Source: Phaeosaccion multiseriatum (lineage: Eukaryota > Protista > Ochrophyta, other classes). Taken from it: a stretch of DNA of 64,000 nucleotides. The translations under genes and the position numbers were made by a program. The stretch spans positions 62,001 through 126,000 of the forward strand of contig OZ218952.1 of the NCBI GenBank assembly GCA_965112735.1, written 5' to 3'. The notes beneath the pieces were generated by a model that saw only the letters and a program-made list of their open reading frames with translations, was not told the origin of the DNA and searched no databases. This document shows, one piece after another, positions 10,144 to 35,328 of the stretch. Each line of letters opens with the position of its first letter. Position 1 is the stretch's first letter.

Positions 10144-10939
10144 TTCTCGCGGTCGTTGCGCTCAATCAAAACTGGGTACCCATTGAGAGGCCTCGCTCCT
10201 CCTCATCCAGTCGTCGCCAATGTTGGGGGATAAACTTTTCATTAAGAGTGCAGTCCTGAGAAGGACTCACCTCGGGGCACACAGTGTCTCCGGGGTGTCG
10301 CTTCCCTGACGGGGGCGAGCACGGGCCTTTGGGGGCAGCGGTTCCGAGGAGCCGCTCATCCCCCCCTTAACTACTGAGTATCTAACTACTAAGGACTAAA
10401 CTAATCTAGATGGGTGGGTGGGTGGAAAAGAAAAAACCTTTGGCTAGACGAGAGCACCATCTTGCTAGCGGGTCAGGCCAAGGTTCTCAAACTTCTACTA
10501 GATGCGTGTGCGTAGCGCAAGCCCTTGCGACAGTTAGCATTGGGGGCACCTCTTGTGTTTGCAACTGTTAGCATGACACAAGTAAGCACACAGCATCTTC
10601 ACCCTCACAAGAGAAGCAGTCGGGCCCTACTGCGATCCTTGCTTTCCTACACCATCGGTCTCTACTCTCCTCCCTGCTTGTACACGCTCCCGCACCTGCT
10701 CTCTATCTCCTTCAATCACGGTAGGGTGGCGAGTACAGCAGGGCTCCTCCTCTTCTGAGCTCCAGCGGAAAATCCAAATCCGTTGTTTTCCATCTGCTGC
10801 CATAAATATATTCTATCCTACCAGTCGGGGTCCACACACGCGCTCACGCTCCACCTCCCCTCGGCTCTCAATACCCTGTTTCTCCGTCGACTCCACTCCG
10901 CGAGAACGGAACTTCCGTGGCTTCGCTGCTGAAGCAGCG

Positions 10940-13900: not shown

Positions 13901-16900
13901 AGACTGGAGGAGCCGCCAGTCACCGCCGCTTGCGACCGATGTTGAAGCCTCATCGATCCGCCGTGAGTGGGAGGAGATGCGTGCTATGTCGCTACCAATC
14001 TGCTGTGCTCCCACCTGCAGAGCCATCAGTGAAAGTGAGGGAGACGCGGCACAGCTCTACTCCCTCCTCCATCACCGGGAGCCCCCGCGGAGTCCTCCGA
14101 ATACGATAGTCGGCGCTCTCTTCATCACCTCCTCCAATGACGGACCAAGACGGAGGGATCTTTCACCCCCCAATCTAAAAGACTCGCCATCGCCGCAGGT
14201 CAAAGGTCGCTCAAATGGCCAATTGATCGGAATTGAAATTCATTTCGGAATCACAGATCCAAAAGACCCATAGAACCAACCCCGGTAGAAAAACCGAAAA
14301 CGCCCCAACAGGGGCACTTATGTTTTCCGCCCCAAGCTCCTAGAACATCGACTCGTAGACGCGGCCCTGCTGCATACACCGTGCCGAGACCCCTCCACTG
14401 CTATCCCAACCGTCCGCTGCGGACTTCCGCTTGACCCGGTCGACAAAACACCGAGGGCAAAACACCTCGCTGCTGTCGTCCCGCAAAACGAACAAGCCCA
14501 AGATCTCAAGCCCTGCTGCCCCAAAGAATCGACCACCGGGCACTCTGGCACGAGGATATGCCATCCCTACTACCCCAAGTAAGTCGCGCAAGCATAGCAA
14601 AACCTAGTGCCTTCTCTCGCCCATTTTCTTCGTTCGCACCGCTCAAGGGCCCCACACACCCAAAAACCCCTCATCTGACCATCTGCGGCACAGGCGGGCC
14701 CAGACACTTACTCCACAGCTGTTGTGTACGACCAAACGCCACTCCGCCGCCGCCCATTGCAGATAAGTCGCGACATGGTCGATGCCCCACTCTCTGCCGC
14801 AACCCCCCAGCGTAGTGCTCTTTCCCCACACTTAACACGTAGATGCGCACCCTAGATGTTGCTGTGTCGTCCGAGATGAAAGCGCTGTGTACTCGCAATG
14901 CTGTCTGCCAACGACCCATGCCTTCCTTGCTCGCTGCGCCCCTCCTGTTGTACGGGGCTTCTCTGTTGTGGCCACAGGTGGAACAGCCGCTTCACACGCC
15001 ACCTCGAGGCGCCAAGCACCATCAAAGCAGAGCTCACCGGTTCCTTGTCATAGCCCGAACACCTGCCCCGTATCCATGCGGCCGGCGCTGCCACACTCAC
15101 GAACTCCTTCGCCGTGGCTCCTGAGGCTCTTGCTGCTTGGCTGAGAGCCCCTTTTCACTCACTTCTGCTGCCGCCCTTCTCCCACACGCAAAACGTCTCC
15201 AAAGGCGAGGAAGAGGAAAACAAGGCCACCTCCCAGCTATCCTTTCGCCACCATGGCACTCACTCCCATACTACACACCAACTGTCCGTGCGCCCGTGCC
15301 CTCCGGCTGCAGCGACACCACTGCGCGCTGCTGCTGCCCACACAATACCTCCCCCCCTGAAAGCCCCCCCTGAGTCCACCTGCCCTGTTGCATCTCCGTC
15401 GGATACGATCGTCGATACGTGGGGCTCTCAGCTGCGGCATCTCCGTCCAATACGATACGCGGGGCTCTCATCACCATCAGGACCAGCCAAGGCGGGAGGA
15501 TCTTTCACCCCCCAACCTAAAAGAGACGCCACCGCCGCAGCGACGCCACAACCAGGCGGGCTGGGGAAGGGAGGAGACGGAGAGGCTGGGGTGGACGGAC
15601 CCCGCGAAACGAATGGAGAGGAAAGGGCGACGAGCTAACGTGGAAGCCCCGTCACCGGCGAGAGAAGAAAGAAAAAACCTTTGGCTAGACGAGAGCACCA
15701 TCTTGCTAGCGGGTCAGGCCAAGGTTCTCAAACTTCTACTAGATGCGTGTGCGTAGCGCAAGCCCTTGCGACAGTTAGCATTGGGGGCACCTCTTGTGTT
15801 TGCAACTGTTAGCATGACACAAGTAAGCACACAGCATCTTCACCCTCACAAGAGAAGCAGTCGGGCCCTACTGCGATCCTTGCTTTCCTACACCATCGGT
15901 CTCTACTCTCCTCCCTGCTTGTACACGCTCCCGCACCTGCTCTCTATCTCCTTCAATCACGGTAGGGTGGCGAGTACAGCAGGGCTCCTCCTCTTCTGAG
16001 CTCCAGCGGAAAATCCAAATCCGTTGTTTTCCATCTGCTGCCATAAATATATTCTATCCTACCAGTCGGGGTCCACACACGCGCTCACGCTCCACCTCCC
16101 CTCGGCTCTCAATACCCTGTTTCTCCGTCGACTCCACTCCGCGAGAACGGAACTTCCGTGGCTTCGCTGCTGAAGCAGCGTTCTCGCGGTCGTTGCGCTC
16201 AATCAAAACTGGGTACCCATTGAGAGGCCTCGCTCCTCCTCATCCAGTCGTCGCCAATGTTGGGGGATAAACTTTTCATTAAGAGTGCAGTCCTGAGAAG
16301 GACTCACCTCGGGGCACACAGTGTCTCCGGGGTGTCGCTTCCCTGACGGGGGCGAGCACGGGCCTTTGGGGGCAGCGGTTCCGAGGAGCCGCTCATCCCC
16401 CATTCACCCAAAGTCCCCAGGGCGCAGCCGCGTCTGCATATGTATCCTACCGCGCCCTGCCCAGCCCATCATGTATAGCCTCCTGCACGCGTACTGAAAT
16501 GCCGTGACCCAGGCCCACCTAAGACTGGAGGAGCCGCCAGTCACCGCCGCTTGCGACCGATGTTGAAGCCTCATCGATCCGCCGTGAGTGGGAGGAGATG
16601 CGTGCTATGTCGCTACCAATCTGCTGTGCTCCCACCTGCAGAGCCATCAGTGAAAGTGAGGGAGACGCGGCACAGCTCTACTCCCTCCTCCATCACCGGG
16701 AGCCCCCGCGGAGTCCTCCGAATACGATAGTCGGCGCTCTCTTCATCACCTCCTCCAATGACGGACCAAGACGGAGGGATCTTTCACCCCCCAATCTAAA
16801 AGACTCGCCATCGCCGCAGGTCAAAGGTCGCTCAAATGGCCAATTGATCGGAATTGAAATTCATTTCGGAATCACAGATCCAAAAGACCCATAGAACCAA

Positions 16901-18827
16901 CCCCGGTAGAAAAACCGAAAACGCCCCAACAGGGGCACTTATGTTTTCCGCCCCAAGCTCCTAGAACATCGACTCGTAGACGCGGCCCTGCTGCATACAC
17001 CGTGCCGAGACCCCTCCACTGCTATCCCAACCGTCCGCTGCGGACTTCCGCTTGACCCGGTCGACAAAACACCGAGGGCAAAACACCTCGCTGCTGTCGT
17101 CCCGCAAAACGAACAAGCCCAAGATCTCAAGCCCTGCTGCCCCAAAGAATCGACCACCGGGCACTCTGGCACGAGGATATGCCATCCCTACTACCCCAAG
17201 TAAGTCGCGCAAGCATAGCAAAACCTAGTGCCTTCTCTCGCCCATTTTCTTCGTTCGCACCGCTCAAGGGCCCCACACACCCAAAAACCCCTCATCTGAC
17301 CATCTGCGGCACAGGCGGGCCCAGACACTTACTCCACAGCTGTTGTGTACGACCAAACGCCACTCCGCCGCCGCCCATTGCAGATAAGTCGCGACATGGT
17401 CGATGCCCCACTCTCTGCCGCAACCCCCCAGCGTAGTGCTCTTTCCCCACACTTAACACGTAGATGCGCACCCTAGATGTTGCTGTGTCGTCCGAGATGA
17501 AAGCGCTGTGTACTCGCAATGCTGTCTGCCAACGACCCATGCCTTCCTTGCTCGCTGCGCCCCTCCTGTTGTACGGGGCTTCTCTGTTGTGGCCACAGGT
17601 GGAACAGCCGCTTCACACGCCACCTCGAGGCGCCAAGCACCATCAAAGCAGAGCTCACCGGTTCCTTGTCATAGCCCGAACACCTGCCCCGTATCCATGC
17701 GGCCGGCGCTGCCACACTCACGAACTCCTTCGCCGTGGCTCCTGAGGCTCTTGCTGCTTGGCTGAGAGCCCCTTTTCACTCACTTCTGCTGCCGCCCTTC
17801 TCCCACACGCAAAACGTCTCCAAAGGCGAGGAAGAGGAAAACAAGGCCACCTCCCAGCTATCCTTTCGCCACCATGGCACTCACTCCCATACTACACACC
17901 AACTGTCCGTGCGCCCGTGCCCTCCGGCTGCAGCGACACCACTGCGCGCTGCTGCTGCCCACACAATACCTCCCCCCCTGAAAGCCCCCCCTGAGTCCAC
18001 CTGCCCTGTTGCATCTCCGTCGGATACGATGCGTCGATACGTGGGGCTCTCAGCTGCGGTCGATACGTGGGGCTCTCAGCTGCCAATCTCCGTCCAATAC
18101 GATACGCGGGGCTCTCATCACCATCAGGACCAGCCAAGGCGGGAGGATCTTTCACCCCCCAACCTAAAAGAGACGCCACCGCCGCAGCGACGCCACAACC
18201 AGGCGGGCTGGGGAAGGGAGGAGACGGAGAGGCTGGGGTGGACGGACCCCGCGAAACGAATGGAGAGGAAAGGGCGACGAGCTAACGTGGAAGCCCCGTC
18301 ACCGGCGAGAGAAGAAAGAAAAAACCTTTGGCTAGACGAGAGCACCATCTTGCTAGCGGGTCAGGCCAAGGTTCTCAAACTTCTACTAGATGCGTGTGCG
18401 TAGCGCAAGCCCTTGCGACAGTTAGCATTGGGGGCACCTCTTGTGTTTGCAACTGTTAGCATGACACAAGTAAGCACACAGCATCTTCACCCTCACAAGA
18501 GAAGCAGTCGGGCCCTACTGCGATCCTTGCTTTCCTACACCATCGGTCTCTACTCTCCTCCCTGCTTGTACACGCTCCCGCACCTGCTCTCTATCTCCTT
18601 CAATCACGGTAGGGTGGCGAGTACAGCAGGGCTCCTCCTCTTCTGAGCTCCAGCGGAAAATCCAAATCCGTTGTTTTCCATCTGCTGCCATAAATATATT
18701 CTATCCTACCAGTCGGGGTCCACACACGCGCTCACGCTCCACCTCCCCTCGGCTCTCAATACCCTGTTTCTCCGTCGACTCCACTCCGCGAGAACGGAAC
18801 TTCCGTGGCTTCGCTGCTGAAGCAGCG
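10940..18827. repeat. Three head-to-tail copies of a ~2.62-kb unit (A-internal-B)
   Basis: Identical ORF sets recur at +2620 and +5241. Copies differ only in homopolymer lengths and a small duplication near 18030-18085. Confidence 0.97.
12090..12615 (-). pseudogene. Decayed tyrosine-recombinase-like sequence (copies at ~14710-15235 and ~17331-17856)
   Basis: Manual minus-strand translation gives LFLAFGDVLRVGE (box I-like), SKSLRSHGEG, and about 125 codons later ALRWGVAAESGASTMSRLICNGRRRSGVWSY (box II-like). It is broken by stops and frameshifts; the motif match is by eye only. Confidence 0.45.
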
Positions 18828-19031
18828 ATCTCAGTTGGGCCTGTTGTGCTGAGCCAATGCCCGGCGTGAGCATGTTGTGGCCAGCAAACGCGTCGTTCGG
18901 GCTGTGTGCGCCCCACAAATGCCGGCTTTAGGCTTTTTTGATCCCAGCACAGAGCCAGATTGGGCCATTTGAGCCCATCCAAGGCCCCACTTGGCGCTGT
19001 TGGGGCAATGCAGTATCTCAGTTGGGCCTGT
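18828..19031. repeat. Terminal ~1.1 monomer of the 187-bp satellite
   Basis: Exact satellite sequence in register with the left array; it ends at gttgggcctgt, abutting Gypsy A. Confidence 0.97.
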
Positions 19032-21199: not shown

Positions 21200-21473
21200 T
21201 GTAGCCAATCCCGCTATCGCTAGCAAGTCGGAAAGTGAGCCAACATTCGAAGAGATGGGTGCAAGGTTGTAAAGTTTGGAGGCCTTGCCTCAGCTCTAGT
21301 AAAGAACCGAGTCTCCTTTAGCTTTAGGGTGGATAAGCTAAGAGTGAGGGAGCGCCACAGACTACTACTCCCGGTGGGCTGTGTGCCACCTCATTGTGCC
21401 ACGTAAGATGTCATATGGGCATGGTGACAGTTACACGTACTAAGGCAATGAATATGAGGCTGTAGGGGCAACA
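21200..21473 (-). repeat. 3' LTR of element B (274 bp)
   Basis: tgtagcc...ggggcaaca, homologous to 47465-47931; polypurine tract on the minus strand immediately internal. Confidence 0.92.
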
Positions 21474-21601
21474 CTTCCCCCTTGAGAGAGAAGCTCGACT
21501 AACGAGAGCGTGACTAAACTAAATGCTAAAAGAGAAGATGAGAGAGAGAGAACATGTTCATATGAATAAAAGTAACCAAAAAGGTTTCCCGAAGGGTTTC
21601 C

Positions 21602-23999
21602 TTATCGGCGGCCTGCTCGCGGGCGTCGGCGTGACGAGGGGCCGCGAGACCGAAGCAAGCGCTTAGCATCCTCCGCCAAAGAGCGACGAGGGAAAGAGGA
21701 GAGGAATTGCTCTAAAAGAGCAGGAACGTCATCATTCATGACTGTCAAAGGTTCCCAAGTATCGTCGGTGGCATTGAAGCCCTTCCAGGAGGTGTGAACC
21801 TGCCAGGGAGCGCCTTGAGAGGGACGTTGTAGGTCCTTGAAGGCGGAGACGACCCAGGAGGCTGAGTCGTGTGATATCTGCTTAAGTAGCTCAGTACTGA
21901 CATTGAGATGCTGGTCAGCGTAGTAGCACAGGCGACAAGCGTGCACTTCAGAGGTTTGCTTCGAGACAAGGTGTTGCACTTTGTAGACCAGAGTGTCAAT
22001 CTCCTCCAGCACTTTATAAGGGCCTTGCCACACTCCAGAGAGCTTGGAGTAGCGGCTGTTGGAAGCGACAAGGACATAGATGCCCGGCATGTAGAGGCCT
22101 TCGTAGTTGAGGGCAGCCGAGAGAGCCAGCTCCTTGCGGTGTTGATGTCCAAGACGAGTAGTGTCCAGACGACGATTGTGACGGTCGCGAGCCGTCGCCC
22201 GCGAGCGCTCAAGTTGAGCAGCAACCCGTTCGTGTCTCTCTTCAAGAACCGCTTGCAGCTGAGCACCATAGTGGTTGAGCTGTTCAAGAGTTGGCGGCGA
22301 AGATTGGAAGTCAACATCGAAGCTGTCGCCCTGTTGCAAGACGATATCAAGTGGAGTCGTCGAACGTAGGCCAGTGTGCAGAAAGAGTGGAGTCTCTTTG
22401 CGGGTCGAGCTGATCGTGGTGTTGATGGCAGCTTGGACCAGAGGTGTGATCAGATTGTAGTCGTCCGCGTCAATGCGAAACTCAGAGAGGAGAGAGCGGT
22501 AGACTGAAACGACAGTGCGTACAGCTCGTTCAGCGAGACCATTACTCCAAGCAGAGTATGGAGCCGAGAAGCGATGTTTGGCGCGAAGCTCAGTCGCTAG
22601 GCGCTTCATCACATGGTTGAGGAAGTGACTGCCTCGATCACTCTGCCACTTGCTCACTACTCCAAATGTGCTGAACCAGCGCATCAATCCACCAACAGCT
22701 GCGTCTGCAGTGGTGGAAGCGCATTCGTTGAGCATGGTGTAACCACTGAAGGCATCTTGGATGCCCAACAGGTATGGCAAGGAAGTGCAGCCCAAGTCAT
22801 GCATGTGGACGAAGTCGAAATGAATCATCTGATTGGGCTTGGTAGGGTGGACCGCACCGCGAAGAGGGCGAGGTATACGATGCCCATGGGAGTTGGTGAG
22901 GCAATGGAGGCAGAGGTCAACAAAGCGAGTCAGGTCGGCACCAATGGTGTGCCAGTGGAATCGTTCCGAGAGAACGGAGAGAGTGGTGTCGGCAGCGCGA
23001 TGCCCTGCCGATCCTTGATGTGCAATGACAGAGAGTCGGACTTGTAGGTCAATGTCGTCATTGGGTATCCACAGAGGACGTGAAGACGCCGATTGAGGTA
23101 CCACAATGGCGTCGAGGTTAGCATCATGCTCCAGAGAAGCAAGGTGCTGCTGAGCTGCAAGCGCTTCGAGAGTGAGCGTGCCTTGGGCAGCCGCTTGAGA
23201 AGAGCGAATCTCCGCGAGAGAGGGCCACTCAAAGTCACTGTCCATGGAGTCGTGCACTGATCCTGGAGAGAAGGTGCGTTGGAGGGCACTCACGCGTACA
23301 GTGTGGTCTTCCGGAGGATCAAGAGGCTTTGTAGCAGAGCCTGGGACTGAGCGGAAGCGAGAGGTCATGTCACCCCACACGTTCAGCTCGCCACTAAGGT
23401 GGGCGATTTCATAATCAAAGCCCGAGAGGAACACAGACCAGCGTTGCAATCGCTCGCGTGCTGGCTTGTGTACGTCACTGATGATGCTACTGGGCCTGAA
23501 GCAGTATTGCAAATTGCGGTGATCAGTGTAGATGAAGAGGTGCACACCAGACATCAGCCAAGGCAGGCGTTCAAAGGACTGGAGGATAGCAAAGGCTTCC
23601 TTGTCAATGGTGGCGTAGTTGAGCTGAGCTCCGGCAAAGCTACCGCTGAGGAAGGCAAGAGGCTCATGGCGCTGTTCGGCGATGGGCTTGCTGAGGTCCT
23701 CAATGGGCACTTGCGTCACCACATTCCCCCAATGGAGATCACTGGCATCAGGAAAGACACAGCGAGCCTTGTCAGGGTCAGGATGAGCAAGCTTGACTTG
23801 ATCTGCCAGAGCGTCTTTCAGAGCTTGAAAGGCTTTGGAGTGCTCAGGGCCCCACCCCACCGAAGAGAGGGAGACGGAGCGAGCGACACGCTTGGTGCGA
23901 GGAGTAGGAGCGGCAGTGGCGTCAGGGTGACGTCTCTGCTTGCGGTTGCCAGCTGCGGAGAAGACGGTTTGGTTGAGCTCTTGCAGAGGAGCGACGAGC
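21602..23999 (-). pseudogene. Element B pol: RNase H, integrase and chromodomain
   Basis: FPDASDLHWG, YTDHRNL, zinc-binding H..H..CLHC, HFDF / SDRGSHF / NGLAER (DDE), and C-terminal WQVHTSWKGFNATDDTWEP. Confidence 0.93.
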
Positions 24000-26900
24000 T
24001 GTGGTAGATTGTCCTGCCTGAGGGTTTCCGGTCACACATTCTGGGGTATAATAAGAATGTCGGTTTCCTAGGCACGCCCCGAGGGGGTTCAACGGCTCTA
24101 ACGTTTCACCCTCCTCTTTGTGGGCACAAGCTTTGCATCAGCAAGTAGTAGAGATATATTATCAATACGGACACTGACGCCCCACCATAGGCGCAGCATA
24201 TACTTAGTCCAAACCCCTTAACGTTTCTACTATCTTAGCTTAGCACAGAACTAGTTCTCGCTTTAGAAAAGCATTGGAGAAGGATTTTCTCGGACCGATT
24301 GGAGGAGCGGCATCATGGCGGTTCAAGGCATCATCATGAGGGACCCAACCCATTATCCGGAGATACGGACGCCTCTATCTGCGGAAGTCGTCAGCGAGTT
24401 CTTACTGCAGTACGATCAGTCCGCGCTCAGGGATAGGGACAAGCCGCTGGATATCCCCAGCATGGTGCAGCTCATCGAACCAGCACACCGTTTTGGAATA
24501 GCCATCGCCAATAAAGTGTCGGAGGCTCAGCTAACGTCCAAGATGGTACGGGATTACTTGGAGAGGTGGTTGAAGAAGAATCGCAGGGAGGACGTCAACG
24601 GCAACGCCACTCTTAATGAGATCATCAGGAGGACGGTAATCGAGTACGACCCAGACCCTCTTCAGTTCAAGCACAATCTCCAGTATATGTGCCAGCAATA
24701 CCTTCGCGCGATTCACGAGTCGGCAGCAAGGAAGGAGTACCTGAATCTGAACCCCACCGATACGAATTACCTTGGTCCGAACGGAAAGCACGCTGCCAAA
24801 GGGATGCAGCGAGGCTTACTTACCGTCATCAAGAATTATGACCCATGCATGGAGAAGATGCTGGTGGACGCGTTCAAAGATGGACAGAAGGACTGGGGAG
24901 AGCATCACGGGGAGTGGATGGAGAAATTCGTCAAACACTTATGCCAGTGGGCCACCATGAGAGCGGCAGCACGGCGTATCGGCGGTAAGGCCGAACATTT
25001 CCTTCCCGGACTCAAGGGTGACCAAGGGGCATCTGGAGGCGGCGGGGGGGGCGGTGGTGGGCAAGGCAAAGGTGCAGGCGGCAAGCGCAAGTGGCAGCAG
25101 GAGCAGCAGCCAAAGCGTACGGGTGCAGAGACCTCCTCGAAGGAGACAGCGGCGGGCAAAGAGACAGCCAGCAACCCATTGAAGAAGGCCCGTACTCCGA
25201 AGTGCTGGGCCTGCGACAAGCCGCATCGGATTGACGACTGCCCTACAACCACTGCCGAAGACAAGAAACGCATCAAGGCAGAGAAACAGAAGGCATGGGA
25301 GCAGAGGAAGGCTGAGGCGAAGAAACCGGGGGTGACGTCCGTCTCATCTTCTTCGGCTGCGGCAGGTGTTTCTTTGCCAGGGCCAGTTGCTATGGACCTC
25401 ACGGGAGACCGCATGAGCGTGGTTCTCGTGAATGACACGACTCCGGAGGTGCGGATGTCGGCGCAAGCCCTGTTTGACAGCGGATGCGATGTGGGTATGG
25501 TCATGGGTGGTGACCTGGCTCGCACGTGGGTCGGAAAGGGTGGTGGCGTACTAGAGGCCTGTGAGCCTTCGGAGTGCGTCACTGCTGCTGGACCTGTGAC
25601 TGCCAACGAAGTGTTGTGCGGCAGTCACCTTGAGATAGAGCTGAGTCATGGAAGCGTGAGTACAGCGCAGCTGGACAAGGAGTTCAGATCCATATTGGTT
25701 CTTGAGAGCTTGGGCAGCAGACTGATTCTGGGCCGGCCTTTGCATAAGGCACTGGGCTTGGAATCTTTGACTGAGCAGTTGCACAGAGTGCACGAGAAAC
25801 GGTCGGAGGAGACCCTGCAGAGGGAGCGTGACGACGCTTCCCCTGCGACAGGGGCCGCCCCGACTAAGCAGCAGAGTGTTGAGAAGAGCGTGTGTTCTAT
25901 GGGCGTTGAAGCCATCCAAGACTTTGTCGATTATGAGGCAAGCAACTTCCCCGTGAAAGTATTGGGGGTAGGAGCGCAGGAGGTTGCGGCCGAGAGCCCC
26001 CCTCCTGTCGCCAGTGCAGAGACACCAGAGGTTAGCGCCATTGGCGGCCAACCGCTTAATAATAAAGACCGTGAAGAGTGTGAAGGTGTACCGGATACTA
26101 TTCAAGGGCCATCAGAGGGAGTTCCCCCTTCTGAGGCACGCCGTAGAGAGGTGCTAGGTCCCATTGTGGACAAAGCAATCACTGATCATGATTTCCCTGC
26201 GGAGCTGAGAGAGCCAATGATGGAAGCTCTCTTAGAGTTCGACGTATGGCGGGAAGAGTTGCTCTTTAGCGACGGCCCCGCTAACGTAGAGCCAATGGAG
26301 GTGACGTTTACCACTAAGGTACCGAGCTCCCGTCTCCCCATAAGGCAACAAGGCGCAAAGGGTGCTTTTGTAAATGACTTTTGCAACAAGTTGATAGACA
26401 AAGGCCTGGGTTATAGCAACCCGCAGAGCGCTCATGGCAGCCCGGCGTTTGCAGTGGGCAAACCCGGCAAGCCAGGCAAGTACCGTATCGTCTGCGACTT
26501 TCGCGAAGTCAATGAAAAGGTACAGAAGGTCGATTTTGGGATGATGAACATTGAAGACGCCGTAGCCTCCATGTTGGGTTGCCTATGGTTCATCGAGATA
26601 GATGGGGTTGACATGTATTGGCAATTCCCACTAGGCAAGTTGAGCCAAGTTGCTCACACCTATATATTCCCAAATGGCAAAGTGACGCCAACTCGAGTAC
26701 CCCAGGGGGCTAAGAACTCGGGCGCTTACGTCCAAGGCCAGATGACCCACCTCTTTCGCAAAGAGTTGTGCAAGACCCACGCCGTCTACATTCACAACGT
26801 AGCGTACTGGGCAAAGGTGGGAGAGGAGATGGTGAGTCTCACTCGACTGACGATGAAGCGCCTTCACAGCGCCAACATCAAGATAGGATTGAGCTCCTTC

Positions 26901-29796
26901 CGCTTCGGCAAAGAGCTTAAGTTCCTAGGCCGCGTGCACGACCGACGCGGCACACGACATGACCCCGCCAGAGTGCAGGGCCTGACCAGTCTCGCGGCCC
27001 CAGAGACGGCTGGAGATTTGATGACTTTCCTCTGCAGCCTGCAGTGGTTTCATCGATACATCAAGGACTTCGCTAAGCTAGTGGGTCCTTTGAACGCGCT
27101 GTTGAACAAAGCCCTCGGGCAGGCTAACGCTAAGCCTCATCAGCACAAGCGCTCCAAGGCAGTGGCCAAGACGATTCCATTGGCTTCTGTGGGGTGGGAC
27201 ATAGAGCACGACGACGCTTTCTTCCAGATCAAGCGCGTTCTTGCACAGAACACGGTGCTGTCGCACCCAGACCCAACCAAACTGGCACTGGTATTCCCAG
27301 ATGCTAGTGACCTCTACTGGGGATGTATGATTACATACATAGACCCCAAAGAGCTGTGCCTTCCGGTACATGAGATGAACCACATCCCGGTGGCCTTCGG
27401 CTCAGGCGCCTTTGAAGGCGCAGAGCTGAGGCGTGCCACCATCGACAAGGAAGGAGACGCGACACTCCGAGGCTTGATCCAGAACGAGTACGCTTTGGTC
27501 GGGGCACAGAAAGTGCACATCTTTTGCGACCATCGCAACTTGGCGTTCATGATGAGCAACGACAGCAAGTACCCTGGCATGACTAAGCCTATGAGGGACA
27601 GGCTGCAGCGTCAGGCCGTGCGCCTTCAGAGCTTTGACTACGTCATTGTCCACTTCCCTGGTCATCTCCATGATTGGGCCGACCCCATTAGCAGGCGGTA
27701 CACGCACCCGGTGAGCCTCACCCCTAGTGTGCTCGCCTTGGGCAAGTTTGGACCCATGCAAGTGTTTGACACTATGTGTGACGACTTCACTTGGCCCTCC
27801 ACAACTGAGATTGCCAGTCTGCAGGCCGACGCTCTTCAGGAGCTCCAGCAGGCTAGCAAGGAGGTGGGAGAGAACGGGCGCCGCCTGCTCCTCTCATCAG
27901 TTGGTGACGACGGGTTGATTCGAGCGTGCCATCCGACGAGCAACCCCGCTGACAGCACCCGCATTTGGATTCCCTCGGTGGGAGCCAAGGCGGAAGACAT
28001 GCACCTGAGGCTGTGTGTGACTGGCCATCAGGGTATGATGGGCCATCAGGGAGAGACAAACACCTTGAGTGCTATTAAGGAGAAGTTCATTTGGCACTCG
28101 CTAGACAAGGACGTGCGAAGCCTCGTTCAGAACTGTCTCCACTGCCTCACCAACGGCAAGGGCGAGAGAGTGCCTCGCCCCCTGCTAGCTCAATGGCACG
28201 CCACTGGACCCCAGCAACTCATCTGGTTTGACTTCGTCAAGATTGGCGATGGAGTCATATGGGCAGAGTCCCCAGAAGGGTTCATGAAGCTTCAGGTCAA
28301 GCAAGTGCTGTGCATCTTTGATGATTTTTCATCATTGTCAATGTATGAGCCATGTTTGGAAGCTACTGCACGAGTGTGTGCACGCGGTCTGTTGCGCTGG
28401 TTCGCACAGCATGGCGTAGTGCCCAGGTGGCAGAGTGACCGAGGCAGTCATTTCCTAAATGAGGTGATACGTGAGTTAAGTCAGCTCTTGCGGTGCAACC
28501 ACCACTTTGTGGTGGCACACAACCCATACAGTCGAGGATTGGGCGAGCGTGGTGTACAGACACTGCAGAAGATCATGAGATCAATGATGTCTGAACTACG
28601 GCAGCCGCCCGAGACATGGCCGCAGCTACTGCCAGTGATGGAGGCTGTTGAGAACAGCTCCAACAAGAGCAGTCGGTCTAACTTGTCTCCCATCCAGCTG
28701 CACAGTGGTCACGTACCACAGCGGCCTCTCGACACGATTTTGATCCACGACGCGGATCGAATGCAAAAGGTTCGGCTACTGCAGCTGACCCCGGCGCAGA
28801 GAGACACCCTTGCGACACAACTCCATCAGAGGAAGGAGGGGCAGCATGCCGAGGCGGCGCGCCAACTGACTACCCTCCGCGATCACAAGCGCGATGGCAT
28901 CAACCAGAGGTTGATGAGTGGCAGACGTGGTGCAGAGCATCGTCAGGACTTGGCCAGAGCTAAGCAGCTCAACAGCGAGACGCTGTTTCAGGTCGGAGTC
29001 TACGTACTCGTTGCAACAGTAGGGCCTACAAGCAAGATACTAGGCAAGTGGCATGGGCCCTGCCGAGTGCTTGAAGCCCTTGAGCAACACGTGTACAAGG
29101 TGGAGGAGCTTGTGGGCAAGAAGCGTACCTATGAGGTACACATCAGCCGGCTCCGCTACTACTGCGGTGCTCACGTTAACGTCACTACCGACGTACTTCA
29201 ACAGATTTCATATAACACCCAAGACTTTGTGGTGGAGGCCTTTGAAGGCCTCGTTAAGCACGCAGATGATTCATGGCACGTCATTGTTAAGTGGCGTGGC
29301 TTTGACGCCCTCGAGAATAGCGAGGAGCCCATCGAGGCGCTGCACGAAGATACTCCACGTTTACTGGAGACCTACCTGCAGCACCATCAGGACAAGCAGT
29401 TGATCAGCGCAGTCCGAGCCTATCTGCGCAAGACTACGACGCGATCGGCTACTAAGCCGCCGCGCTCCGCGCGCACACGAAAGCGGACACAAACTAGATG
29501 ATAGACACACTTACTTCCCAGTTGGCTCGAACTGTCGCTTGGGGGTAGTGTGGTAGATTGTCCTGCCTGAGGGTTTCCGGTCACACATTCTGGGGTATAA
29601 TAAGAATGTCGGTTTCCTAGGCACGCCCCGAGGGGGTTCAACGGCTCTAACGTTTCACCCTCCTCTTTGTGGGCACAAGCTTTGCATCAGCAAGTAGTAG
29701 AGATATATTATCAATGCGGACACTGACGCCCCACCATAGGCGCAGCATATACTTAGTCCAAACCCCTTAACGTTTCTACTATCTTAGCTTAGCACA
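24000..29796 (+). mobile_element. Full-length chromodomain Gypsy element C, 248-bp LTRs, TSD GAGC
   Basis: LTRs 24000-24247 and 29549-29796 (TG...CA, one mismatch seen). GAGC at 23996-23999 and 29797-29800. PPT-like gggggtag. Removal restores B frame PRFAELVAPLQEL. Confidence 0.97.
24315..29501 (+). CDS. Single-ORF Gag-Pol polyprotein of element C (zinc knuckle, PR, RT, RH, IN, chromodomain), 1728 aa
   Basis: CWACDKPHRIDDC, LFDSGCD, IEIDGVDMYWQFPL, PTRVPQG, YIHN (atypical), FPDASD, SDRGSHF, VKWRGFDALENSEEP. Confidence 0.95.
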   Translation: MAVQGIIMRDPTHYPEIRTPLSAEVVSEFLLQYDQSALRDRDKPLDIPSMVQLIEPAHRFGIAIANKVSEAQLTSKMVRDYLERWLKKNRREDVNGNATLNEIIRRTVIEYDPDPLQFKHNLQYMCQQYLRAIHESAARKEYLNLNPTDTNYLGPNGKHAAKGMQRGLLTVIKNYDPCMEKMLVDAFKDGQKDWGEHHGEWMEKFVKHLCQWATMRAAARRIGGKAEHFLPGLKGDQGASGGGGGGGGGQGKGAGGKRKWQQEQQPKRTGAETSSKETAAGKETASNPLKKARTPKCWACDKPHRIDDCPTTTAEDKKRIKAEKQKAWEQRKAEAKKPGVTSVSSSSAAAGVSLPGPVAMDLTGDRMSVVLVNDTTPEVRMSAQALFDSGCDVGMVMGGDLARTWVGKGGGVLEACEPSECVTAAGPVTANEVLCGSHLEIELSHGSVSTAQLDKEFRSILVLESLGSRLILGRPLHKALGLESLTEQLHRVHEKRSEETLQRERDDASPATGAAPTKQQSVEKSVCSMGVEAIQDFVDYEASNFPVKVLGVGAQEVAAESPPPVASAETPEVSAIGGQPLNNKDREECEGVPDTIQGPSEGVPPSEARRREVLGPIVDKAITDHDFPAELREPMMEALLEFDVWREELLFSDGPANVEPMEVTFTTKVPSSRLPIRQQGAKGAFVNDFCNKLIDKGLGYSNPQSAHGSPAFAVGKPGKPGKYRIVCDFREVNEKVQKVDFGMMNIEDAVASMLGCLWFIEIDGVDMYWQFPLGKLSQVAHTYIFPNGKVTPTRVPQGAKNSGAYVQGQMTHLFRKELCKTHAVYIHNVAYWAKVGEEMVSLTRLTMKRLHSANIKIGLSSFRFGKELKFLGRVHDRRGTRHDPARVQGLTSLAAPETAGDLMTFLCSLQWFHRYIKDFAKLVGPLNALLNKALGQANAKPHQHKRSKAVAKTIPLASVGWDIEHDDAFFQIKRVLAQNTVLSHPDPTKLALVFPDASDLYWGCMITYIDPKELCLPVHEMNHIPVAFGSGAFEGAELRRATIDKEGDATLRGLIQNEYALVGAQKVHIFCDHRNLAFMMSNDSKYPGMTKPMRDRLQRQAVRLQSFDYVIVHFPGHLHDWADPISRRYTHPVSLTPSVLALGKFGPMQVFDTMCDDFTWPSTTEIASLQADALQELQQASKEVGENGRRLLLSSVGDDGLIRACHPTSNPADSTRIWIPSVGAKAEDMHLRLCVTGHQGMMGHQGETNTLSAIKEKFIWHSLDKDVRSLVQNCLHCLTNGKGERVPRPLLAQWHATGPQQLIWFDFVKIGDGVIWAESPEGFMKLQVKQVLCIFDDFSSLSMYEPCLEATARVCARGLLRWFAQHGVVPRWQSDRGSHFLNEVIRELSQLLRCNHHFVVAHNPYSRGLGERGVQTLQKIMRSMMSELRQPPETWPQLLPVMEAVENSSNKSSRSNLSPIQLHSGHVPQRPLDTILIHDADRMQKVRLLQLTPAQRDTLATQLHQRKEGQHAEAARQLTTLRDHKRDGINQRLMSGRRGAEHRQDLARAKQLNSETLFQVGVYVLVATVGPTSKILGKWHGPCRVLEALEQHVYKVEELVGKKRTYEVHISRLRYYCGAHVNVTTDVLQQISYNTQDFVVEAFEGLVKHADDSWHVIVKWRGFDALENSEEPIEALHEDTPRLLETYLQHHQDKQLISAVRAYLRKTTTRSATKPPRSARTRKRTQTR

Positions 29797-29800
29797 GAGC

Positions 29801-30432
29801 TCTGCAAAGCGTGGGATGCAGTCTCGCATCCAGCCAGCAGCGGCGACGAATTGAATCAACTCAGCACCGTTCTTGGGCTCCTCGAGGTCGAGGAGACCTT
29901 GGATCTTGACAGGGTCATGCTTGACGCCGTCGCCATCATAGATCTTCCCGCAGAACTTTTGCGAGTTGCCAATGGATACACCCGAGAGCCCGAGCTTGAA
30001 ACCGGCCTTGGCGAGTGCATCGAGCACAGACTGAAGAATGGAGCGGAACTCTTCCTCCGTGTGGGCCCAGATGGTGATGTTGTCGATCCAGGTAACAAGG
30101 TTGGTGCCGAAATGTTCAGAGAGGCACTTAGCTAGAGTGCTCTGTGCAAACTCACTGGCATTGAGGATGCCTTGAGTCACACGCGTGGGAGTAAACTTCC
30201 CGTCAGGGGTGCAGTAGGTGAGGATCTCTTGGCTGGAGAGATCGAGGGGCAGCTGCCAGAACATGTTGGCAAGGTCAAGCTCACAGAAGAAGCGTGCTCC
30301 GCGCATCTTGGCACTGATCTCAGAGAGATTGGGCATGGGAAAGCGGGAGCGAAGAGTGCGAAGGTTGACTTCTTGGTAGTCAGCTACCTGCCTGAACTGT
30401 CCAGGCTTGTCGGGCTTCTGGATACAGAAAGC
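29801..30432 (-). pseudogene. Element B reverse transcriptase core
   Basis: FRQVADYQEVN, FCELDLANMFWQLPL, PTRVTQGILNA, WIDN; bounded by inserts C and D. Confidence 0.93.
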
Positions 30433-33400
30433 TGAGCTACCTGGGATGTGGGACAGACCACACACCCCAGACAACCAACAAGCAAGGGGTTCTTATCCTA
30501 TGTAGAGCGTGTATTAGCTTTCCTTATCAATCTCACTTTCCTATCTATCCTCCTCCTGCGACATGCCGTTCATATGAAGCACGTGTTCCCCAAATGGCGA
30601 CAATCCGGATTCGAACATAACAAACACCTTTGAGACTCCACAACTTCCCCCCCCCAAGACCGAGGCCAACCAGCCAAGGACTGAGAAAACTGTGGGGCGA
30701 AAAGGAGCAGCTCACACACAAACCTCTAATAGAACTATAGCAAACCAATGGGGAAAGAAACAAAGTCCAAAACCCCATGCATCTAGCAGCAGGCAAAGCA
30801 GCAAAGCATCCATATTCCAAAGCGTAGCACCAACTTCTTCAGCAAACAAAAGAAAATAACGGTGAGACACAACACCAAAAAGAAAAATGAGAACAACCAC
30901 ATACTAACCGACCCGTACCCGTTGTGCACACAGCGAGCTGAAGCATGAATACCGATCAATGCCAACCCCCCAAGTCGTAGCGCCAGCAGTGTTGCCTCCA
31001 AAAGAAAACCAAGCTCTCGAGCTCCAGAAGAGTTGATCAGACCCTGCGCAATAAGCAGCAGTAGCAGTAGCAGCAATCCCATCAATAAAGCAAACCAAAT
31101 CCCAAATGCGTGCAGCGTATCCTCGTCTCAATGTGTGTCATCAAAGGACGGCAATACCTCCAAACAAAGCCGCAGGCAGAGCAGCATAATCCAATTTCCA
31201 TAGCAAGCACCAAGTAACCAGCTCCAGCAGCATCCATGCGGCATATACATCGCGAAAACACTGCGAAATCCGCTGACAAGGCCAGCATAAACAGCAAAGT
31301 GCGTCCGATGCAGCAAATTCAAATTCTTTTTGGAATCACAGATCCAAAAATGTCCATATAACCAACCCCTGTAGAAAAGCCGAAAATGCCCTCACAGAAG
31401 CACTCATGTTTTCCACTCCAAGCTCCTCGAACATCAACTCGTAGAAGCTATCCTTCAGCATACGCCGTACCAAGACCACTCCGCTGCGATTCCAATCGTC
31501 CGCCGCGAACTTCCGCTGTACCAGCTGAACAATACAACGAATGCAAAACACCTCGGTGCTGCGGTCCCGAAAAACGAACAAGTCCAATATCTCAAGCGCT
31601 GCTGCACCAATCCATCGACCACCGAGCCCGATAGCAAGAGGATAATCCATCCCTACTGCCGCAAGTAAGTCGCGCAAGCACAGCAAACCACAAGCCCTTT
31701 TCTCTCCCATTGCCCACGTTCACACCGCTCACGAGCCCCAACGCCGAAAAATCCATCACCTGCTCCTCTGCATCACAGGCAGGCCCCAAAACCCACTCCA
31801 TAGCTATTGTGAACGACCAATCGTCATGCCCCCGCCGTCGATGGCAGATAAGTAGCCACATTGCTCAATGCCCCAATTTCCTTCAGCACCGGACGACGGG
31901 CATCTCCGCACACCCCGTAGATGGCCACCAAATGCTGCTGTACCTCCCGAAATGCAAGCGCCGTACACTCCCAATGCCGCCTTCCAATTCCTAATGCCTC
32001 CCTTGCATGCTGCGCCCCTCCTGTCGCGCTTCGCTTCGCTGTTCTGGCCACAGGTTCAATATCCGCTCCACACGCAAACTCAAGGCGCCAACCACCATCA
32101 AAGTGCTCCCCGGTTCATTCCAACAGCCCGAATAGCTGCCTTCGTATCCATGCTGTCACCGCTGATGCTCGTACTAACTGTCTTGCTGTAGCTGCTTGTC
32201 CTGAGAGCCCAATTGCACCACTGCTGCCGTCCTGCTCTCGCGCAAAAACTCTCCAGGGGCGAGGAAGATGAACACAATGCCACCTTCCGGCTATCCTTTT
32301 GCGACTAATGCACTCACTCCCACTACCCTCGCTGGCCGTGCTCCCGTGCGGCCCGTGTGCATCGATAGTAGGCGGGGGCGAATCACTTATTGCTGTTGCT
32401 GTAGCGTTGCTGCTAAATTCCGCTTCTCCAAGCGGGGCTGTCTCTATGGTTATATCCGTTGCGCCAAGCGGGGCGTTCTCTATGGCTGTAGGCGAAGCAC
32501 TCCCGTGGGCAATTTCCGCTGTATCAAGCGGGGCGGCGGCGTTCTCAATGGCATCACTGATGGCTGTGGCTGTAGCGGTGCTGCAAATTTCCGCTTCTCC
32601 AAGCGGGGCTGTCTCTATGGCTGTATCCGCTTCTCCAAGCGGGGCGTCGGCGTGTTCTATGGCAATTTCCGCTGTATCAAGCGGGGCGGCGGCGTTCTCA
32701 ATGGCATCACTGACGGCTGTGGCTGTAGCGGTGCTGCAAATTTCCGCTTCTCCAAGCGGGGCTGTCTCTATGGCTGTATCCGCTTCTCCAAGCGGGCCGT
32801 CGGCGTGTTCTATGGCAATTTCCGCTGCTCTAAGCGTGGCTTCCTCTCCCTCAATTTCCAAAATACTTCGCTCCATTGCGATCCCTGTTGCTTCCCCGCC
32901 CTCGTCCGCCTTAGACGGAGCGTAAAAGCTATGCATATCCAGTGCCTCATCACAAGACAGCGATGCTGGCGTATCCCCATGCTGTGCTACTCGCTGCGAA
33001 CACAAAGCCTGTCTTCGGTCCTCACGCAATGACTCTGCCTTTGTCTGTTGCATCCACTGTTCCACGAACGGCATAGACAGCTGATGCAACCGCAATACAT
33101 GCTGCTGAAACCAAAGCTGGTCATCACTGCTACGAGGAGAATCCAATCCAACCATCCTGCTGTGCAATCGCCATCGTTCTAGTCTTTGTCTGCTACAGCC
33201 ACGCAACACCAACAAAAGGAAAATCCCTCAGCTTCCACCAAGTTGAGCCACCTGGGATGTGGGACAGACCACACACCCCAGACAACCAACAAGCAAGGGG
33301 TTCTTATCCTATGTAGAGCGTGTATTAGCTTTCCTTATCAATCTCACTTTCCTATCTATCCTCCTCCTGCGACATGCCGTTCATATGAAGCACGTGTTCC

Positions 33401-33453
33401 CCAAATGGCGACAATCCGGATTCGAACATAACAAACACCTTTGAGACTCCACA
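30433..33453 (-). mobile_element. Non-autonomous LTR element D (LARD/TRIM-like), 210-bp LTRs, TSD AAGC
   Basis: LTRs 30433-30642 and 33244-33453 (one mismatch seen). tRNA-type PBS TGGTGGAAGCTGAGGGA on the minus strand 3 nt from the 5' LTR; G-rich PPT. Removal restores B frame AVWASRAFCIQKP. Confidence 0.93.
32115..33215 (-). CDS. Hypothetical acidic Ala/Glu-rich ORF with 51-aa (153-bp) repeats inside element D
   Basis: 366-codon open frame with repeated APLDTAEIAIEHADAPLGEADTAIETAPLGEAEICSTATATA; no recognised domain. Confidence 0.35.
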   Translation of the reverse strand: MLVLRGCSRQRLERWRLHSRMVGLDSPRSSDDQLWFQQHVLRLHQLSMPFVEQWMQQTKAESLREDRRQALCSQRVAQHGDTPASLSCDEALDMHSFYAPSKADEGGEATGIAMERSILEIEGEEATLRAAEIAIEHADGPLGEADTAIETAPLGEAEICSTATATAVSDAIENAAAPLDTAEIAIEHADAPLGEADTAIETAPLGEAEICSTATATAISDAIENAAAPLDTAEIAHGSASPTAIENAPLGATDITIETAPLGEAEFSSNATATAISDSPPPTIDAHGPHGSTASEGSGSECISRKRIAGRWHCVHLPRPWRVFAREQDGSSGAIGLSGQAATARQLVRASAVTAWIRRQLFGLLE

Positions 33454-34682
33454 AAGCGCGGCTGGCCCAGACGGCCTGAGGGTTTGGATAGTGATATCCG
33501 AACTTGGAGAGCTCGTCCGTGAAGTCTCGAAGAAAGTCACGACGGGCACCGGATTGGTAGATGGGCAATTGGCAGATGGGCTCCGCTCCGTCCTTGAGGC
33601 GAATGACCATGGGGTCGACCTTGGCAGGAGGGTCATGCAAGAGCGCTTTGCCTCGCCATACTTCCGGGTGTGAGGTAAGGACCTGATAGAGAGCGGCGGT
33701 GTCGGAGAAGCCTACTGCTGATTGAGCAATGGGGAGCAGAGCTTCTTTGATTTGAGTTTCCGGTAAGACGGGAGAATCAGACACCTCAGGGAGAAGATCA
33801 TCGTAGCGGGCCAAAGGTTCATTATTAGAGGTGCCAACTTCACTGCGAGCAGTAAAGGTGGCGGAAGCTACGTGGAAGACTTCGTCAGAAATGCATTGCG
33901 AAGCATACACATCATCAAAGAGCAGTCCCAGAGATCTATAGAAAAGTTAGCGTTGTCTCCGATACACTGCTCAGGCAAGGAAGCAAGAGAAGCACCCGCT
34001 TGTAACAACGAACTCAGCCACGCGCACCGTTGCAGAAGACGCATCAGTGGGAGTGGAGTTGCGCAGTTCAAAGGGCACTTCCGAACCAGCCACAGCTGCT
34101 TGCTTCTCCGCCTGCTGTCGGAGCTGCTCTCGGGGCAGCGCGAGACCCAGCTGTTGGGCCAGCCCTTTCCCTAGGTAGAAGAGAGGGGCCTCATCCTCGC
34201 GCGGCTCAAAGAGCAATGCAGTGAGAGATGGAAGTGCGACAGAAGAGAGAGGACCCGCGTCCGTATGAATGTGAAAGTGAAAGTTGCTGAGCTCATGCGT
34301 GATGACTTGTGAGGTGCTGCATCCAAAAGGCTGCAGCTGCACCGGCTTAGGAAGAGCGCGAATGGAGACATCCATTCCGTCTGCTACCATCTCGTCCGCC
34401 ACAGGCCTGGGAAGGAGGCAAAAGGTCTCCGCACCGGTGTCGACTAAGCACTCGAGAGAGCGCTTCTTCAGTTGTCCTGTTTGATGCGTAAGAGCATGCA
34501 AAGAAGCAGGAGAGGAAGAAAAGAGAGAGATTGTTCCATCAGTGGGAGAGTGCGAGAGTAAGTCATTAGCAGTGGTCAGAGTACTGACCTCATAGTTCTT
34601 GGGAGGGTTCCAAGGCAGGTTGCGGTCGCTCATAACCTTCATGCGCTCCGCTTTGTTCTTGAGCTGCGGGCAAGTATAGAGC
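33454..34682 (-). pseudogene. Element B: end of gag, aspartic protease and pre-RT region (frameshifted)
   Basis: CLVDTGAETFC in ORF 33971-34642; PPAKVDPMVIRLK and YPNPQAVWASR in ORF 33356-33910. Confidence 0.88.
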
Positions 34683-35328
34683 GGCCATTCTCTCTACCAT
34701 ATGTCCAAGCTGAAGACGGGGGAGGATGGCACACGGCAGGGGCTCGCAGACAGCGGATCGGCGCTCAACGTGTGGCCAAACTTGGATGGACTGTACGATT
34801 TCCGCGCTCATCAGAGTTTAGTGCAACTAGCAGACGGCAAGTCGCACGCGAAGATACTGGGCAAAGGGAAGGTGAACATCAGCTACGTCTCCAACGAGGG
34901 AGTCAGAGGACTGAAGGGGCTGGAGGTAGTGGTGTCGCCAGACGTACCTTTCTGCATTTTCGCAGAGAAGAACCTCTCAGACCTACTGGGGGGGAGCGCA
35001 AGGCCAACGGGGAAGCCAGTCTATTTCGGCCCATCACCCGACGCACCATAGACGGTGCATACGACGCAGGACCCAGAGCTGGAGCTTGACATGCTACAAT
35101 TCAAGATCGAGGAGGCCACGGAGCAGTGGAGTGATTACATGACCTACCACTGCAAGAACGGCCACCGCAACGATCAAGAACTACGGCGACAGGCCAAGCT
35201 GGAGGGCGTGACACTGTGCGGGAAGAGGGCGCCGTGCAAGACATGCGCAGAGGTGAAGATGACGAAGGCAGCTCAGAGCAAGCAGTTCATCGACTACCCC
35301 AAGGCACCGCTGGCACAGGTAACGCTCG

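Follow-up and report, generated by a model that had tools for sequence, protein, structure and literature searches.

How does a long terminal repeat (LTR) retrotransposon start reverse transcription when a palindrome stands where its primer-binding site (PBS) should be? Minus-strand priming is one of the steps that define LTR retroelements and retroviruses, and to our knowledge only priming by a transfer RNA (tRNA, whole or half) and self-priming of the Tf1 type from the transcript 5′ end have been demonstrated for LTR retroelements. The question is raised by a 64-kb stretch of DNA from the ochrophyte Phaeosaccion multiseriatum (contig OZ218952.1, positions 62001–126000; hereafter the window), which belongs to a 67-Mb genome with plastid and mitochondrial contigs. 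Beyond a satellite, the window consists of nested LTR retrotransposons. Three of these, the Ty3/gypsy chromoviruses C, E and B, each carry a perfect palindrome of 12–14 nt that begins on the final A of the 5′ LTR. Judged from sequence comparison, this palindrome is probably the PBS for minus-strand synthesis, in place of a tRNA PBS. We give a probability of roughly 0.5 to the fuller reading, i.e. that this site would be primed by the same palindrome on a second element RNA.

Palindromes at the LTR ends of C, E and B

Element ends in the window were obtained by self-BLAST and protein domains from Pfam, and element families across the genome were sampled by short segments of the actual copies rather than from consensus or repaired element sequences. 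The features of the three chromoviruses are as follows.

24000–29796, plus strand: chromovirus C, with a 1728-aa gag-pol containing reverse transcriptase (RT), RNase H, integrase and a chromodomain (self-BLAST, Pfam)
24000–24247, plus strand: 5′ LTR of C, 248 bp, TGTGG...GCACA, 99.6% identical to 29549–29796
24247–24258, plus strand: palindrome AGAACTAGTTCT of C, a proposed primer-binding or self-priming site
24260–24275, plus strand: small hairpin of C, GCTTT-AGA-AAAGC, overlapping a second, 8-nt palindrome AAAGCTTT
29541–29548, plus strand: polypurine tract of C, GGGGGTAG
29549–29796, plus strand: 3′ LTR of C
41402–46829, plus strand: chromovirus E, with a 1630-aa open reading frame (ORF) and domains as in C (self-BLAST, Pfam)
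41402–41577, plus strand: 5′ LTR of E, 176 bp, TGTGG...GCTACA
41577–41590, plus strand: palindrome AATAATCGATTATT of E, starting at the last LTR A; five genomic copies
21200–47931, minus strand: chromovirus B, with nested insertions (i.e. C, a small LTR element, a copia fragment and E)
47465–47931, minus strand: 5′ LTR of B, TGTTG...GGCTACA, pairing with the 3′ LTR at 21200–21473
47452–47465, minus strand: palindrome AATAAAGCTTTATT of B, starting at the last LTR A; eight genomic copies
21474–21481, minus strand: polypurine tract of B, GGGGGAAG
21200–21473, minus strand: 3′ LTR of B

All three palindromes thus lie where the first-pass annotation of this DNA had read them. The LTR ends were set without recourse to the palindromes, by LTR pairs or by other copies. 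In C, the LTR pair, the 4-bp target duplication GAGC (23996–23999 and 29797–29800) and the preceding GGGGGTAG place the LTR end at 24247, the first A of AGAACTAGTTCT. The 3′ LTR of E in the window (46669–46829) is 15 bp short; four other 3′ or solo LTRs of the E family in the genome stop at query position 138–139, i.e. at the A of ACA at 41577, so the LTR end that had earlier been guessed for E is the true one. About 17 copies of the 3′ or solo LTR of B stop at query position 96–97, corresponding to 47465. Perfect palindromes of at least 12 nt number just eight in the 45 kb outside the satellite, with a miniature inverted-repeat transposable element excluded, and three of the eight sit exactly on the LTR ends of C, E and B. 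The chance expectation of a palindrome at one fixed position is ∼2e-4, and a chance origin of this placement is excluded.

C and E both contain RVT_1, RNase H and integrase domains, together with Chromo matches whose E-values (5e-4 in C and 1.4e-4 in E) lie below the Pfam cut-off; B contains RNase H, integrase and Integrase_p58_C. By RVT_1 and the domain order RT–RNase H–integrase, the three are classed as chromodomain Ty3/gypsy elements. Two peculiarities of C may be recorded here. The window copy has a private A at 24273, where every other copy has T. The RT active-site motif of C (26787–26798) is YIHN, with both aspartates of YxDD replaced; the motif is YIDN in a 61%-identical relative (P0001/L074) and W[LV]DD in E and the metagenomic relatives. 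Despite YIHN, there are ∼14 near-identical copies of C with long ORFs, and given that its LTR end and palindrome are common to sister families, mobilization of C in trans is conceivable.

Palindromes across the genome and in relatives

The palindrome of C is invariant in all copies of the family in which the junction between the 5′ LTR and the internal region was read, with one exception. In that copy (L043; G000:C8:880368–880643, minus strand), a 5-nt insertion has produced the 17-nt sequence AGAACTAG-A-CTAGTTCT, which keeps its symmetry: two arms of 8 nt flank a single central base. A 91% subfamily keeps the LTR, AGAACTAGTTCT and the hairpin motif of 24260–24275 and diverges 37 nt past the LTR, and families with only 61–66% polyprotein/RT identity to C (L061 and L074) retain the LTR end ...TAGCACA together with AGAACTAGTTCT. 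The whole genome has 33 AGAACTAGTTCT sites and the control 2; the genomic sites belong to no fewer than five subfamilies, non-coding derivatives included. All assignable sites are at LTR ends, as are the previously unassigned ones that were checked (8 of 8). Because the sites occupy LTR ends across divergent and non-coding families alike, the palindrome behaves as a cis signal.

We then compared the palindromes of different families. A search with the pattern ACAATAANNNNTTATT gave 26 matches against 1 in the control, and 21 of the 24 nuclear matches have a self-complementary core, i.e. AGCT (8, family B), TCGA (5, family E) or CTAG (8, family G); the others are CTTG (2) and TGCG (1). B, E and the fourth gypsy family, G, therefore have common arms (AATAA/TTATT) around three different self-complementary cores. 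Two copia families of this genome also have palindromes at their LTR ends. In the junctions below, a slash marks the LTR end.

Gypsy family G (L099 and L100), palindrome AATAACTAGTTATT: ...GACTCCACA/ATAACTAGTTATT
copia1: ...GCAACA/CGACAGCTGTCG, target duplication GCACC
copia2: ...CCAACA/CGACAATTGTCG, target duplication CTCTA; 44% RT identity to copia1

In copia1 and copia2, the palindrome begins one base past the terminal LTR A. Across the genome, 17 of their sites have the core AGCT and 23 have AATT; one AGTT intermediate was seen, and the control gave four matches. Variants changed in a single arm are rare: the copia form CGACAGTTGTCG was seen at one site (G000:C9:400824–400839), the family G form AATAACTTGTTATT at two (G000:C9:2017380 and 2020559) that are 3.2 kb apart and in opposite orientation, and one E copy (L063) has its first A replaced by T, leaving a 12-nt palindrome. 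The copia and family G forms could represent either a passage from one symmetric state to another or copies in decay.

Outside relatives were retrieved by protein search and contig retrieval, and about 10 related elements from other sources, including one on a Phytophthora palmivora contig, have the same palindrome layout. They are listed with the palindrome in round brackets; MAG stands for metagenome-assembled genome.

L075, ENA metagenome: GGCTAC(A/ATATCGATATT)
L076, ENA metagenome: CGCTAC(A/ATATCGATATT)
L077/L078, contigs in two bacterial MAGs: GGCCAT(A/ATATCTAGATATT)
L079, ENA metagenome: GTCTAT(A/GTTGTCGACAACT)
L081/L083, metagenome: TTACTA(CA/ATAATATATTATTG)
L084/L086, metagenome: GCAC(A/TTAGCTAAT)
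L096, ENA metagenome: GACAAC(A/TTGATCAAT)
L095, Phytophthora palmivora contig: CCACCAC(A/AAGTTAACTTT), with a clean LTR pair and the target duplication AACCT

The palindrome of E differs from that of L075 and L076 (AATATCGATATT) by the symmetric loss of one base pair. Three further candidates were not counted: L080 (the 10-nt AATAATTATT, at −4.4 kcal/mol) and L097 (ATATTAATAT) were judged insufficiently strong, and L098 is without a junction. The collection of bacterial and archaeal genomes yielded only one 5′-truncated contig (L089), and IMG/VR none. L074 is a Logan contig of SRR29999185 with the family junction ...GGCTTTAGCACA/GAACTAGTTCTCGCATTTACAAGG. Members of this family whose leaders are nearly identical occur in the present genome as well (G000:C3:22644, C3:5851781 and C14:2627687), so L074 does not count as independent evidence from a second taxon; SRR29999185 may derive from the same species or a sister one.

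In all, 14 different palindromes were found in gypsy and copia families of this genome and of other sources, six of them in this one genome, and the differences between them are symmetric (i.e. compensatory). The central 4 nt are self-complementary in all 14, and the symmetry stops exactly at the A...T pair in 12 of the 13 tabulated gypsy junctions. In every family whose LTR end was fixed independently (i.e. C, B, E, copia1, copia2 and L095), the palindrome begins either on the final LTR base or one base later. Position and self-complementarity are thus conserved while sequence varies, as had been proposed from C, B and E alone.

Candidate primers and rival explanations

Known priming modes were examined for an ordinary explanation of these junctions. 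The first-pass annotation had noted the want of a TGG-type PBS, and indeed no TGG follows the LTR end of C, E or B, the post-LTR sequences of the three being GAACTAGTTCT, ATAAAGCTTTATT and ATAATCGATTATT. Neither CGACAGCTGTCG of copia1 nor CGACAATTGTCG of copia2 has the TGG start of a canonical tRNA PBS. That no palindrome begins with TGG speaks against tRNA 3′-end priming. With RF00005, the only tRNAs to score in the genome were organellar, B-box pattern matches stayed at control level (none of the 12 candidates examined was a tRNA) and ARAGORN detected tRNAs neither in the window nor in the flanks of the transposable elements. The Rfam scan of 19000–49500 found nothing at the three junctions; its sole match was a sub-threshold one to the microRNA family MIR8139 (47090–47147). 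Genomic occurrences of the 12–14-mers that could be examined or assigned are all at LTR ends, none of them in RNA genes.

The results for self-priming of the Tf1 type are similar. It had been remarked that the LTRs hold no copy of the palindromes, and this holds for their complements: a complement of at least 7 nt to the post-LTR sequence is absent in C and E, and only one 7-mer is present in B. RNAduplex was also run for the site against as much as 300 nt of the LTR upstream of it, and in none of 13 elements did the best duplex surpass those obtained with shuffled LTRs. Tf1-type priming was rejected on these grounds, i.e. LTR complements and duplex energies show nothing beyond chance. No second copy of the palindrome of at least 8 nt lies inside C or E. 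A palindrome:palindrome duplex, by comparison, is calculated at −9 to −21 kcal/mol in all elements but L080. As to transcripts, no RNA run contained element C, which occurred solely in four Logan-contig runs of one study; Logan contigs aligned on 23900–24700 yielded neither ends nor joints that were informative, and the ends of molecules are not visible in contigs.

The primer 3′ end must anneal 0–3 nt from the LTR end, and the place of annealing defines the end of U5 (the unique 5′ region of the LTR). The palindrome lies at 0 or +1 after the LTR, is conserved in cis and has no alternative nearby, which argues that it is the PBS. Because it is complementary only to itself and is family-specific, the primer would come from the element itself, most likely from a second RNA copy. 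We propose that (i) two genomic RNAs would pair via a palindrome:palindrome duplex of 10–14 bp; (ii) one of them would be cleaved at the 3′ boundary of the duplex or immediately beside it, most likely by the RNase H of the element; and (iii) the new 3′-OH would lie opposite the last base or bases of U5 and be extended into U5 and R (the repeated region). In gypsy elements the duplex would include the terminal LTR A, which would fit a primer that is kept until plus-strand synthesis, with the integrase trimming at CA later; primer retention was reportedly described for Tf1 by Atwood-Moore in 2006. At the site, the plus strand would be copied from the primer RNA, and the minus strand from the template RNA. 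Any alteration of one arm would then be mirrored to the other arm in the progeny, the heteroduplex resolving into a new perfect palindrome. Such mirror copying would keep the palindromes perfect while their sequence drifts, and the rare one-arm variants (e.g. AGTT, CTTG and the T in L063) could be post-insertion or unresolved states. For the duplex in trans, cleavage and mirror copying taken jointly, we consider the odds slightly less than even.

Several points weigh against this reading. Priming, cleavage and dimerization are each deduced from sequence, and a cut 3′ of the site would part the RNA body from R–U5, so that one of the two RNAs would be sacrificed. The AT-rich 10-nt palindromes form weak duplexes (−4 to −9 kcal/mol). 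As only organellar tRNAs were scored, an 8–9 nt match to a nuclear tRNA fragment is possible. A U5–leader stem that brackets the palindrome is significant in L077, L079, L083 and L095, and not in C, B or the copia families, and is not taken to belong to the palindrome feature. Among the relatives, several metagenomic LTR ends were placed only from the polypurine tract and terminal inverted repeats (e.g. TGTAGCC...GGCTACA in L075 and TGTAGAC...GTCTATA in L079), the contigs being circularly assembled, and the LTRs of L077 and L079 end in ATA rather than ACA. Finally, the outside elements were found via a scan for perfect palindromes, and the absence of G:U pairs among them is therefore partly a matter of ascertainment.

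The alternative that survives best, although we regard it as unlikely, is that the palindrome is a dimerization or packaging signal only and that the element uses another primer (e.g. one matching a tRNA fragment or small RNA). Dimerization of retroviral and Ty1 RNAs via palindromes is established (discussed in PMC5445492), and the dimer initiation sites of retroviruses and the PAL sequences of Ty1 are, like the palindromes here, self-complementary sequences of the 5′ leader that pair two genomic RNAs. The perfect symmetry through the centre likewise fits an intermolecular duplex, and the restriction of the tRNA scan to organellar hits leaves room for a nuclear primer. However, known dimer sites are short palindromes, usually in hairpin loops, and exist in addition to a tRNA PBS, whereas the palindromes here hold the exact 0/+1 primer position with no other PBS candidate in the first nucleotides. 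At least six different sequences per genome would require as many host primers, and a signal for dimerization alone leaves the missing PBS unexplained.

A second alternative, which we consider improbable, is intramolecular: the palindrome would form a hairpin, the RNA would be cut 3′ of it and the hairpin would prime its own U5. The first-pass annotation had named such fold-back beside an RNA dimer. The geometry would be that of the model in trans, with the 3′ end opposite the U5 edge, and monomer folds sometimes draw the palindrome as a small hairpin (E and L077). A hairpin loop, however, has at least 3 unpaired nt and leaves the centre free to vary, yet the centre is self-complementary throughout; moreover, 10-nt sites would give stems of just 3 bp. 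Monomer folds of the leaders are, with one exception, no better than shuffles, and the palindrome is not paired with a downstream partner in them. The self-complementary centre and the sharp stop of the symmetry at the A...T pair point to a full duplex of two strands rather than a hairpin, so the fold-back variant is disfavoured and pairing with a second RNA is preferred.

Less probable again is a role in DNA, i.e. that a dimeric protein (the integrase, or else a transcription factor or repressor of the host) binds the palindrome, which would then not be a signal for RNA priming. Perfect Watson–Crick symmetry without G:T is typical of DNA sites of this kind, and several cores are classical 6-bp palindromes (ACTAGT, AAGCTT and ATCGAT). 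A single protein would not, however, recognize 14 unrelated sequences; nor would there be a reason for the lock to the last LTR base in gypsy and copia elements of stramenopiles, an oomycete and fungi, or for the want of a PBS. Conventional or known alternative priming (by a tRNA 3′ end, by a tRNA half as in copia/Ty5 or by the transcript 5′ end as in Tf1) comprises the only mechanisms demonstrated so far and includes the self-priming of chromoviruses of the Tf1/sushi/Tcn1 group (PMC6317226), but is very improbable here given the junctions without TGG, the LTR complements at shuffle level, the location of the 12–14-mers, the Rfam result and the odd-length loops of tRNA arms, which cannot give perfect even palindromes of 12–14 nt.

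Known systems, neighbouring elements and implications

The closest precedent is fungal. Donnart et al. 2017 (PMC5445492) described in GalEa copia elements a ‘Conserved Hairpin Site’, a palindrome that includes the final LTR A (e.g. A/CTGATCAGT and A/CTAATTAGT), and proposed that it replaces the PBS; the site fits no known model and its mechanism was not given. In the literature searched, just one further paper refers to this site. The likeness is threefold, i.e. no tRNA PBS, a post-LTR palindrome that includes the final LTR A and no complement in the LTR. Palindromes that include the final LTR A are found in C, B, E, G, L074–L079, L083, L084/L086, L095 and L096. The differences are that (i) the elements here are Ty3/gypsy chromoviruses as well as copia families, and come from an alga, an oomycete and marine metagenomes; (ii) the palindromes are longer (10–14 nt, one of 16) and vary widely between families; and (iii) those of copia1 and copia2 start after the terminal A, not on it. 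GalEa elements also have a second conserved sequence of 9 nt, CHSeq2, which lies 12–41 nt downstream and is complementary with a fixed A/A mismatch (PMC5445492). No such partner was found here: C and E have no second palindrome copy of at least 8 nt, the folds show no downstream pairing and, in C, only the unrelated small hairpin and 8-nt palindrome follow. Membership of C, B and E in the GalEa clade was rejected, as their RVT_1 and the order RT–RNase H–integrase are those of Ty3/gypsy.

Among chromoviruses, Tf1 makes its self-primer by an RNase H cut in an 11-bp RNA duplex (Levin 1995, 1996; as summarized in PMC7175516). Tf1/sushi elements resemble those described here in being Ty3/gypsy with a chromodomain and without a tRNA PBS, and the duplexes are of similar length (∼11 bp in Tf1 and 10–14 bp here). 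The PBS of Tf1, however, is non-palindromic and pairs with the first 11 nt of its own transcript, with the complement in the LTR, whereas the palindromes here are without LTR complement and pair only with themselves, which implies a second RNA. In SM-Tcn1 of Selaginella (PMC2864245), a chromovirus, neither tRNA nor Tf1 priming was found and the mechanism was judged unclear or novel, and Tcn2–5 of Cryptococcus are cited in PMC7175516 as having no identifiable PBS. Both are thus Ty3/gypsy chromoviruses in which, as far as these descriptions go, neither mode has been identified; the descriptions, on which alone the comparison is made, report no palindrome. A plant-wide survey lists just tRNA, half-tRNA and Tf1-like self-priming (PMC6317226). 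A literature search for a palindromic PBS in gypsy elements or chromoviruses found none. The claim that the mechanism was undescribed stands in that no report for Ty3/gypsy appeared in the literature searched, and falls in that the same feature has been reported for GalEa copia (PMC5445492).

The remaining features of the nested region are listed below.

30429–33454, minus strand: small LTR element inside B (self-BLAST)
33220–33243, minus strand: junction of the small LTR element, ...GGCTCA/ACT/TGGTGGAAGCTGAGGG (= ...GGCTCA/ACTTGGTGGAAGCTGAG)
36976–39924: copia fragment inside B, 5′-truncated (RVT_2)
47643–47838: palindrome-ended insertion of 196 bp, within the 5′ LTR of B

The small LTR element had been held up as a neighbour with a TGG-type PBS. 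It does look TGG-type, as its junction ...GGCTCA/ACTTGGTGGAAGCTGAGGGATT resembles a tRNA PBS of 18–19 nt ending in the T-loop-like AATCC, but the implied tRNA gene was not found: no tRNA gene in the genome matches at 15/16 or better, the 16-nt tRNA-like complement matches only the element's own copies and matches with one mismatch are not tRNAs. The same junction can be read as an imperfect inverted repeat (CTCAACTT-GGTGG-AAGCTGAG), whose start lies 4 nt within the LTR. The element is a contrast, outside the palindrome class.

The window also contains other repeats. A satellite fills positions 1 to ∼10,100 with over 55 near-identical units of 187 bp, and a tandem array of 2.6-kb units occupies 10144–18832. 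A non-autonomous element with a 255-bp LTR (TGTTAGAAG...CTCTTTACA) is represented at 36700–36954, 48412–48666 and 35325–35469, and has internal 113-bp tandem repeats (35538–36291); the ACCCCAAAGAATCCCGAAGG after its 5′ LTR is neither a palindrome nor a TGG start. Elsewhere in the genome, the locus L094 (G000:C13:3314500–3323500) and ∼30 similar loci hold abundant retroelements with ORFs of 1,500–3,300 aa, whose RT is only 25–28% identical to gypsy RT and which have no LTR pair within the 9 kb examined. They are probably non-LTR elements or another class. The plastid has ORFs resembling groEL, thiG and ycf42, which points to a plastid of the red lineage; an exact look-up of two of its proteins gave no match.

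The palindrome-bearing gypsy and copia families of this genome have recently amplified. Together with the oomycete and metagenome relatives and the GalEa report, they point to what may be a widespread and overlooked mode of priming. More tentatively still than for the joint mechanism above, we suggest a third general start of reverse transcription, in which a family-specific palindrome would pair two element RNAs and one, once cut, would prime the other. Mutations in one arm would be mirrored into the other, so that replication itself would keep the palindrome while its sequence drifts. This mode would be used by Ty3/gypsy and Ty1/copia elements in stramenopile algae, oomycetes and fungi, and would free them from host tRNAs. 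The comparison of single-arm with double-arm mutations would be a simple experimental handle on it. The PBS checks of annotation tools in the style of LTR_retriever would miss or down-rank such elements, and the mechanism, if true, would explain the chromoviruses for which the literature records that no PBS was found.

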